32,000 nucleotides of DNA from Zygophlyctis sp. KS116. Lineage: Eukaryota; Fungi; Chytridiomycota. Below the pieces are notes generated by a model. It saw only the letters and a program-made list of their open reading frames with translations. It did not search any database and was not told where the DNA came from. The position numbers and the translations under genes are program-made. Location: assembly GCA_054661495.1 (NCBI GenBank), contig BAAFSQ010000006.1:1-32000 (forward strand), given 5' to 3'. Shown here piece after piece: positions 21,730 to 23,923 of this stretch. How positions within the stretch are numbered: position 1 is the first letter of the stretch; every line of letters starts with the position of its first letter.

Positions 21730-23923
21730 CTACAATTCTAGATCATTAGTTATATAATAATTATTACCGTCGTGATCAGATGGCGCTTCAAATTCTCCTG
21801 AGCCACCAGCTCCACCATCATATAATTTGGATGTGATTGGGTTAACAATCGCTTCCAATTCAGCCTTCTGTTCTTCAATATCTTCTTTAGTGGCTGAATG
21901 ACCGTTAGCCTCAAGCCAGGTAGACTTAGCCTTGAGAGCTTCATTGATAGTTTTTTTATCCTCATCAGCGAGCTTTCCACCAAGCTGATTTTCATCAGAG
22001 ACCTGGTTCTTAAGAGAGTAGACATAATTTTCTAATTGATTCTTGGCTTCAATTCTTTCCTTGACTCGATTGTCCTCATCAGCCATATCTTCGGCTTCTT
22101 TGATCATACGTTCAATATCTTCCTCTGAAAGACGTCCTTTATCATTTTTGATGGTGATAGATTCCTGTTTACCAGTACCCTTTTCATGGGCAGTGACTCG
22201 GAGAACACCATTTGCATCAAGCTCAAAAGTGACTTCAATTTGAGGGACTCCACGGGGAGCTGGGGGTACACCAGTAATATCAAATTTACCCAAAAGATTG
22301 TTATCCTTGGTAAGAGGACGTTCACCTTCAAAGACTTGAATCATGACAGTATCTTGGTTGTCAGCAGCAGTAGAGAAAATCTGTGATTTCTTGGTAGGGA
22401 TTTGAGTATTTCTTGGAACAATCTTTGACATTACACCTCCAGTGGTTTCAATTCCCAAAGTCAAAGGATTGACATCCAAAAGTAAAACACCTCCAGTTCC
22501 TTTCTCATCACAGTTTGTCAAAACACATCCTTGAACGGCAGCACCATAAGCAACAGCCTCATCAGGATTAACTCCCTTTGAAGCCTTTTTTCCATTGAAA
22601 AAGTCTTCCAAAAGTTTAACAACAATTGGAATACGAGTGGATCCACCAACCAATACAACTTCATGGATATCATTCTTATTCAGATTGGCATCCTTCAAAA
22701 CTTTTTCGACTGGAATCATAGTTTTTTTGAAAAGATCCATATTCAATTCTTCAAACTTTGCACGGGTCAATTGTTCAGAAAAGTCATTTCCTTCATGGAA
22801 AGATTCAATTTCCACACGAACAGACATTTGAGAAGATAATGAACGCTTAGCTTTTTCAGCTTCACGCTTCAATTTACCCATGGCCTTGGCGTCCTTTGTA
22901 CAATCAAGACTATGTTTTTTCTTGTAGGCTTTAACAAAGTGCTGGATTAATCTATTATCAAAATCTTCACCACCTATAATTTTCAAAGATTCAAATCATA
23001 CCCAAATGTGTATCACCATTTGTAGCCAATACTTCAAAGACACCATCATCAATCGTAAGAATAGAAACATCAAAAGTACCACCTCCAAGATCAAAAACAA
23101 GAATATTCATTTCACCACCCTTCTTGTCTAATCCATAGGCAATTGCAGCAGCAGTTGGCTCATTAATAATACGGGCAACAGTAAGACCTGCAATTGTACC
23201 TGCATCCTTTGTTGCTTGACGTTGAGCATCATTAAAATATGCAGGAACAGTGACAACTAAGGGTTAGATTTCACAACAAAGGGCTAAATTGGTGCTAGGC
23301 TACAGACCACAACGCCTGACCTTGACAAGACATTCAAGCCTAGGTTTGAAAGGGTCAAAAGGCCGAGACCTGTCACGGTCCATAACCAAGCACAACAATC
23401 CAGTCTAAATTATATACCTGCATGAGTAACTTTTTCACCCAAATATCCTTCTGCAATTTCCTTCATTTTACCAAGAATCATTGCAGAAATTTCTTCTGGA
23501 GTAAATTTCTTTGATTCTCCCTTAACAGTCACCTGAACAATTGGTTTTCCTTCCTTATCAATAACTTTAAATGGCCAGTGTTTCATATCATCTTGAACTT
23601 CCTTATCCTTAAATCTACGACCTATTAATCGTTTGGCGTCAAAGACTGTATTATATGGATTTAAAGCCATTTGATTTTTAGCAGGATCCCCAACTAAACG
23701 TTCAGTATCAGTAAAAGCCACGTAGGAAGGAGTAATTCTGTTTCCTTGATCATTAGCAATAATATCCACTTTTCCATTTTTATAAACACCCACGCATCTT
23801 TTATTTAAAAAATATAAATTACGAATAAGTAGTTCCTAAATCAATACCAATGACCGTTCCAGAGATGTCATCTGCAGCAACTAGCGCACAAAACGTCAAA
23901 AAAAGAGATTTCAAAAGTTTCAT
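21730..23923 (-). CDS. KAR2: ER Hsp70 BiP (649 aa)
   Basis: Signal peptide [54 protein letters not shown]. Introns 23798-23822, 23257-23417, 22974-23001 and 21738-21767. Spliced C-terminus is HDEL. Confidence 0.98.
23284..23403 (-). ncRNA. Candidate structured intronic RNA (long bulged hairpin) in BiP intron 2
   Basis: Sense GUGCUUGGUUAUGGACC (23393-23377) pairs with GGUCUGUAGCCUAGCAC (23308-23292) at 16/17 positions. CUGGAUUG/CAAUUUAG extends the stem outward, and GCC/GGC, UGACC/GGUCA and UUCAA/UUGAA form inner stems. Confidence 0.6.

Follow-up and report, generated by a model that had tools for sequence, protein, structure and literature searches.

How does a gene in a genome of tiny introns come to carry an intron of 161 nt, and what, if anything, is the long hairpin predicted within it good for? 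The intron is the second of BiP/KAR2, a gene on the minus strand of the window (the whole 32,000-nt stretch of DNA that was analysed) that starts with an ATG at 23923, encodes a signal peptide and comprises five exons separated by introns of 25, 161, 28 and 30 nt (coordinates are collected in Table 1). The closest named BiP proteins are those of chytrids (75-79% identical), and in a BiP protein tree the window falls within an environmental clade that is sister to the sampled Rhizophydiales, e.g. Batrachochytrium and Terramyces (96/91; one gene only). DNA of the window was found in freshwater metagenomes, and the clade as a whole consists of uncultured chytrids near the Rhizophydiales with dense introns of 23-34 nt, as seen on contigs C6, C1 and C2 and at loci L002-L034.

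The intron runs GT...CUAAC...AG, lies in phase 1 within THA/VVTVP and is flanked by exons across which the Pfam HSP70 profile continues gap-free (12-136, 138-221 and 223-598). In metatranscriptome X8, one contig spans 23749-23418 and then continues for 37 letters that are unlike the intron. Since the HSP70 profile is unbroken across the exons and the RNA contig halts exactly at 23418, the segment 23417-23257 is confirmed as a genuine BiP intron of 161 nt. Other RNA contigs have the 28- and 30-nt introns removed, no contig inside intron 2 was listed for either of the two RNA runs, and RNA depth at 23384 was zero in both, whereas DNA runs cover this position. These data fit normal splicing of intron 2, bearing in mind that contigs drop rare forms and that contigs of long-RNA runs can neither measure retention nor show small RNAs. 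The ER-retention signal HDEL arises only by splicing of the 30-nt intron near the stop codon (21738-21767, minus strand), and the corresponding skip is present in an RNA contig. Intron 1, which measures 25 nt in the window and 26 nt in L004, is absent from L002 (1622-1730), L033 and the L003/L026 species, a pattern that may reflect recent loss or gain. Upstream of the gene, 25-36 nt from the ATG, a 12-nt perfect palindrome centred on ACGCGT (23948-23959), the 10-nt core of which is kept in the near strain L028, is a candidate transcription-factor site.

For a survey of intron lengths, a self-trained gene finder was applied to 232 kb (1.8% of the genome; C6, C1 and C2) and returned about 433 introns of 21-37 nt with a mode of 26 and 19 longer candidates. 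After long candidates with a margin under 4 had been discarded, together with a 151-nt candidate in HBS1 (margin of 1.2 for the exact boundaries), clear-margin long introns of 44, 48, 50, 52, 65, 67, 68, 82 and 161 nt were left; no other credible one of the roughly 440 introns is as long as BiP intron 2. For the window, a preliminary description of this DNA had counted 47 of 49 introns at 23-32 nt; that figure was close, although the exact count did not hold, our model giving 43 in addition to the 161-nt intron and one of 68 nt. The same description had rightly called BiP intron 2 richer in GC, the values being 0.45 for the intron and 0.49 for its core vs 0.21 across 432 tiny introns. The introns of 44, 48 and 52 nt have no predicted structure, those of 67 and 68 nt fold weakly, and all clear-margin long introns fold to 54 nt or less, lengths that, for about nine credible long introns sampled, would fit a ceiling near 55 nt. 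Shuffles of BiP intron 2 are likewise left with 39 ± 8 unpaired nt on folding, and effective length by itself is therefore not diagnostic; in the folding model it is by stability only that the intron is set apart from its shuffles. Among the other long introns, the AU-rich one of 82 nt in an RCL1-like gene (C6:64100-64181, plus strand) is predicted to form a single hairpin (z −2.1) with about 35 nt remaining, and the predicted 68-nt intron of the window (27665-27732, minus strand) has almost no structure, is about 54 nt long when folded and keeps its sequence in L028. The ambiguous long-intron region in HBS1 (window 19779-19929, plus strand) terminates in a 26-nt GT-AG unit. In the literature we found no description of tiny introns in chytrids, nor of BiP intron retention in fungi.

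The sense strand of BiP intron 2 was predicted to fold at −51.3 kcal/mol (z −3.46), a stability reached by none of 200 shuffles, and the antisense strand at −37.1 kcal/mol (z −1.36), so that the comparison with shuffled controls proposed in the preliminary description came out in favour of the sense strand. Computed with the splice signals held open, the structure is a single rod of intron nt 15-134 with 47 pairs (19 G-C, 18 A-U and 10 G-U), one U-U and a few bulges, and without any A-C mismatch. None of 1160 sampled 120-nt windows of the genome came close to it (best −34.3 vs −47.8 for the rod). The outer stem (23403-23377 with 23308-23284) has the make-up originally described, about 25 bp with one 2-nt bulge, one U-U and five G-U pairs; we count 24 pairs besides the U-U, with pair probabilities of 0.87-1.0. 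Further in, UUCAA/UUGAA, which had also been pointed out, is part of the favoured fold together with GUCU/AGGC, GGCCU/AGGUC and UGAC/GUCA, whereas the register proposed with it (GCC/GGC, UGACC/GGUCA) makes up less than 1% of the ensemble; likewise, the competing pairings suggested earlier are present in the sequence, but account for only 1-5% and about 0% of the ensemble. The donor (nt 1-6) and the CUAAC motif (nt 151-155) are both predicted to lie outside the rod, the pair probabilities of which are near 1; this would leave about 41 nt unpaired, in agreement with the earlier estimate of about 40, and about 33 nt between donor and branch point. In an unconstrained fold donor nt 4-9 pair weakly with nt 141-146, a pairing that is lost in L028. 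The rod contains a G-U-rich duplex of 22 nt (nt 25-46/105-126) and is predicted to stay intact to 55°C, its main helices keeping probabilities of 0.90-0.99 at that temperature. By sequence inspection, the apical loop contains no GNRA, AGNN or Ire1-type loop, and an Ire1-type site was also rejected for CUGUAGC, which lies inside the stem.

Table 1. Positions in the window of BiP/KAR2, its second intron and the elements of the predicted rod.
Feature	Position	Strand	Basis
BiP/KAR2 gene, including C-terminal HDEL	21730..23923	−	gene model and RNA contig
BiP exon 2, HSP70 profile 12-136	23418..23797	−	profile match
BiP intron 2, 161 nt, phase 1, GC 0.45	23257..23417	−	gene model, HSP70 profile, exon boundary in RNA contig
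BiP exon 3, HSP70 profile 138-221	23002..23256	−	profile match
5′ splice site GUAUAU	23412..23417	−	common donor: same start in 24/432 tiny introns
AAUUUAG copy 1, nt 7-13, possible target-site duplication	23405..23411	−	sequence
Rod 5′ arm, intron nt 15-72	23346..23403	−	predicted fold
22-nt near-continuous duplex (one U-U), 5′ strand, flanked there by 2-nt bulges	23372..23393	−	predicted fold
Apical loop, 8 nt, nt 73-80	23338..23345	−	predicted fold, sequence inspection
Rod 3′ arm, nt 81-134	23284..23337	−	predicted fold
22-nt duplex, 3′ strand	23292..23313	−	predicted fold
AAUUUAG copy 2, nt 128-134, also end of 3′ arm	23284..23290	−	sequence and predicted fold
CUAAC branch-point motif beyond the rod (branch A 23264)	23263..23267	−	predicted fold and intron survey
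3′ splice site UAG	23257..23259	−	gene model

The departures of the rod from a perfect inverted repeat had been read as a sign of selection on RNA folding, and we simulated neutral decay by resolving the wobbles to perfect pairs and re-applying the 11 changes, 600 times for each of three levels of sense bias. Transitions make up only 43% of the substitutions between near strains. In the simulations, the mean number of G-U pairs among the 11 differences was 2.4-3.6, the ten of the rod were reached in none of 1800 runs, and the observed energy gap between sense and antisense strands was matched in 0-2% of them. Because neutral decay does not reproduce ten G-U pairs, the sequence appears to have been filtered for RNA pairing or to have arrived as folded RNA, with the caveat that the energy model behind the pairing is biased towards G-U and that just 1/32 is obtained from the outer stem by itself. 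On this modelling the argument from ten G-U against zero A-C is supported, and we regard the hairpin as real and as selected at the RNA level, or else acquired as folded RNA.

Orthologous BiP loci, gathered by protein searches and contig look-ups, place the rod in time. In near strains, the BiP genes of which differ at 0-5% of 4-fold sites, intron 2 measures 157-161 nt and the same rod is kept, with three one-sided compatible changes, three that break pairs and two stem deletions. The covariation expected of a conserved structure was not observed: there was no compensatory double change among the four near strains, and no significant extra conservation, since in L028 7.1% of neutral sites vs 3.2% of paired sites differ over 9 kb (P about 0.1, not significant) and in L031 three paired sites differ vs none of 99 neutral ones. 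In four more distant species (4-fold differences of 42-47%, three measured), intron 2 is 27, 26, 26 and 75 nt long and in two outgroups 34 and 143 nt, the 75-nt (L004:1007-1081) and 143-nt (L030:1162-1304) introns being independent expansions with folds unrelated to the rod. A covariance model of the rod (R1) had no match at the sister and outgroup BiP loci. The 75-nt intron of the fourth sister species forms a small unrelated hairpin, and the U-run and A-run ends of the 143-nt intron are able to pair. Neither the four sister species nor the two outgroups have the rod in BiP, which rules out a conserved control element of this gene as well as a conserved intronic ncRNA; and since the orthologous introns are short or unrelated, the sequence of the rod is dispensable and turns over. 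Most simply, these sequences suggest that the rod was gained once, on the lineage that led to the window's species.

In six other lineages the orthologous introns have a different feature in common, an ACGC (CACGC in five) ahead of a U-run (L002:2109-2135, L003:285-310, L033, L004:1007-1081, L034 and L030:1162-1304). ACGC occurs in none of 432 tiny introns of the window's genome and is absent from the sense strand of its BiP intron 2, while the palindrome upstream of the gene contains it. The motif may resemble the core of the yeast UPR element in reverse complement and is possibly a conserved cis-element in a 26-nt intron. The signal is suggestive only, given the close kinship of four of the six lineages and the higher GC of the two outgroups.

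Taken together, we consider it probable that the rod is a lineage-specific intronic zipper stem, which would shorten the intron to about 41 unpaired nt. By parsimony, about 120 nt would have been added to a once-tiny intron on the branch to the window's species, with an insertion accompanied by a 7-nt duplication, or an inverted duplication, as candidate sources. According to the gene models, the spliceosome here works on introns of 23-34 nt and tolerates unfolded ones of up to about 52 nt. A stable rod is predicted to form from the added sequence during transcription, with the donor and the branch point unpaired and separated by about 33 nt; changes that break pairs would then be selected against and G-U wobbles would accumulate, as the ten G-U and zero A-C pairs suggest. 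The intron would be spliced constitutively, the rod having no sequence-specific job and, we infer, being kept because it brings the donor near the branch point. The earlier idea of a long intron made to fit a tiny-intron spliceosome fits the 41 nt predicted here. What speaks against the zipper stem, besides the missing compensatory changes, the non-significant conservation of paired sites, the similar effective length of shuffles and the weak folding of the 67- and 68-nt introns, is that the stability and GC content of the rod far exceed what shortening would require. Structure-based intron shortening as such is an already described mechanism and not new.

The rod may instead be what is left of a structured RNA or small mobile element that was already folded when it was inserted and has since simply been tolerated, an unlikely reading, which concerns origin and is compatible with the zipper stem. 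It would account for the GC of the core (0.49 vs 0.21 in tiny introns), for the placement of the gain on one branch and for a 7-nt direct repeat, AAUUUAG, around a segment of 114 nt (a post hoc observation; position-restricted shuffles put its chance at about 0.02). The second AAUUUAG copy, however, belongs to the stem, whereas the terminal repeats of a MITE sit inside the duplication; there is no poly(A) tail; and BLAST, the covariance model and arm patterns (19-mers with 3 mismatches) found no second copy in the assembly of 12.7 Mb (1175 contigs; it may be incomplete), which excludes the multi-copy MITE considered in the preliminary description. Searches of viral contigs and of viral and prokaryotic genome collections gave no match either, and a metagenome pattern scan turned up no further contig. 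Homology of the intron's 3′ tail to the 34-nt intron of an outgroup is suggestive and not significant (P 0.08-0.13). The preliminary description had recognised no known family, and indeed Rfam (E up to 10) gave no match in BiP intron 2, snoRNAs included, or at the relatives' loci, and a tRNA scan none. Box C/D snoRNAs were rejected for want of a box C (RUGAUGA) or D (CUGA) on the sense strand and box H/ACA snoRNAs for want of ANANNA or of ACA after the rod. A displaced U1 or U5 snRNA was also rejected, despite the resemblance of GCCUUUU to U5 loop 1, ordinary U1 and U5 genes lying on other contigs. The U5 genes stand in tandem clusters of at least five copies, and U1 is represented by two adjacent, equal-scoring copies (C456:220-712, C51:52195-52520 and C548:191-680).

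The main rival, a tailed mirtron or milRNA precursor, in which Dicer would cut the 22-nt duplex after splicing and debranching and Argonaute would load one strand, strikes us as unlikely. In the genome, Piwi domains occur at two loci and pairs of RNase III domains at two more (domain matches only), the duplex is near-continuous and G-U-rich, and four strains are identical over intron nt 108-141. Both strands of the duplex nevertheless vary between near strains, the divergence of which is too small to give a comparison with neutral DNA much power, the 5′ strand by a 1-nt deletion at nt 33 in L032 and run X6 and the 3′ strand by U107G in L031. Moreover, the rod is absent in sister species, 19-mers from either arm have no other genomic site within 3 mismatches, and tails of 14 and 27 nt would both require trimming; intronic mi/milRNAs are also rare in fungi (PMC9757828). 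If the intron were a Dicer substrate, BiP transcription in this chytrid would also yield a small regulatory RNA. It would rather surprise us if the intron proved to be either a young Dicer substrate or an old stress-regulated intron, as the CACGC of relatives might hint, the control of which was replaced by a folded insert.

We regard as quite improbable a regulated splicing switch or thermosensor acting on BiP under heat or ER stress, as the preliminary description envisaged. The host is a stress gene, the ACGC/CACGC shared by six other lineages hints at constraint on the position, and donor nt 4-9 are able to pair weakly with the 3′ tail. Against this, the main helices persist at 55°C as stated above, the alternative pairings did not exceed 5% between 15 and 65°C and Rfam contained no matching riboswitch. 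In L028, the deletion of nt 46-48 and changes at nt 87-94 remove both proposed switch pairings, and the donor-pairing bases are deleted too. With alternatives at 5% or less up to 65°C and broken in one strain, a heat sensor or switch is therefore unsupported; in addition, no RNA contig is listed inside the intron and sister species have no rod. Hardly credible, finally, is a DNA inverted repeat that decays neutrally without any RNA-level role: the strains have diverged almost neutrally and some of the changes disrupt pairing, but ten G-U pairs never arose in simulated decay, which also rarely matched the sense-antisense gap.

As a single element, the rod is a modest finding, another long intron folding to suit a short-intron spliceosome. 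Its value is comparative, since one intron position measures 26, 26, 27, 34, 75, 143 and 161 nt across an uncultured clade of tiny-intron chytrids, and each long version with its unrelated fold belongs to a natural series on how limits on intron length are enforced. The series also bears on how new hairpins, which can serve as raw material for small RNAs, originate; in practical terms, work on it is limited because there is no culture of the organism.

Like intronic C/D and H/ACA snoRNAs, the rod is GC-rich and structured and belongs to an intron of a strongly expressed gene; unlike them, it has no C/D, H or ACA boxes and no Rfam match and is absent in sister species. With tailed mirtrons and fungal milRNAs (PMC9757828), it shares a long intronic hairpin, a 22-nt duplex and a genome with Dicer-like and Argonaute genes, but the duplex strands are polymorphic and the hairpin is separated from the splice sites by 14 and 27 nt. 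The zipper stems of Saccharomyces, e.g. that of RPS17B, show 20-30% conservation and a patchy distribution across orthologues (Rangan et al. 2025, PMC12350175); the stem predicted here likewise lies between donor and branch point and is poorly kept in orthologous introns. Yeast zipper stems are defined with 42-85 nt of linker (PMC12350175), in contrast to about 33 nt here, and because this species has whole introns of 23-34 nt, the yeast steric limit is inapplicable to it. Long cis-spliced introns with stem-loops are also known from Trichomonas vaginalis, Giardia and Spironucleus (Hudson et al. 2019, PMC6679479); the introns of T. vaginalis are uniformly short, about 25 nt, and folding of long introns brings their ends to 25-44 nt (PMC6679479). 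As in Trichomonas and the diplomonads, a short-intron genome here contains a long intron with an extended stem, and the 41 nt predicted to remain fall within 25-44; unlike those intron-poor protists, the host is an intron-dense chytrid, and the element is recent and absent in sister species.
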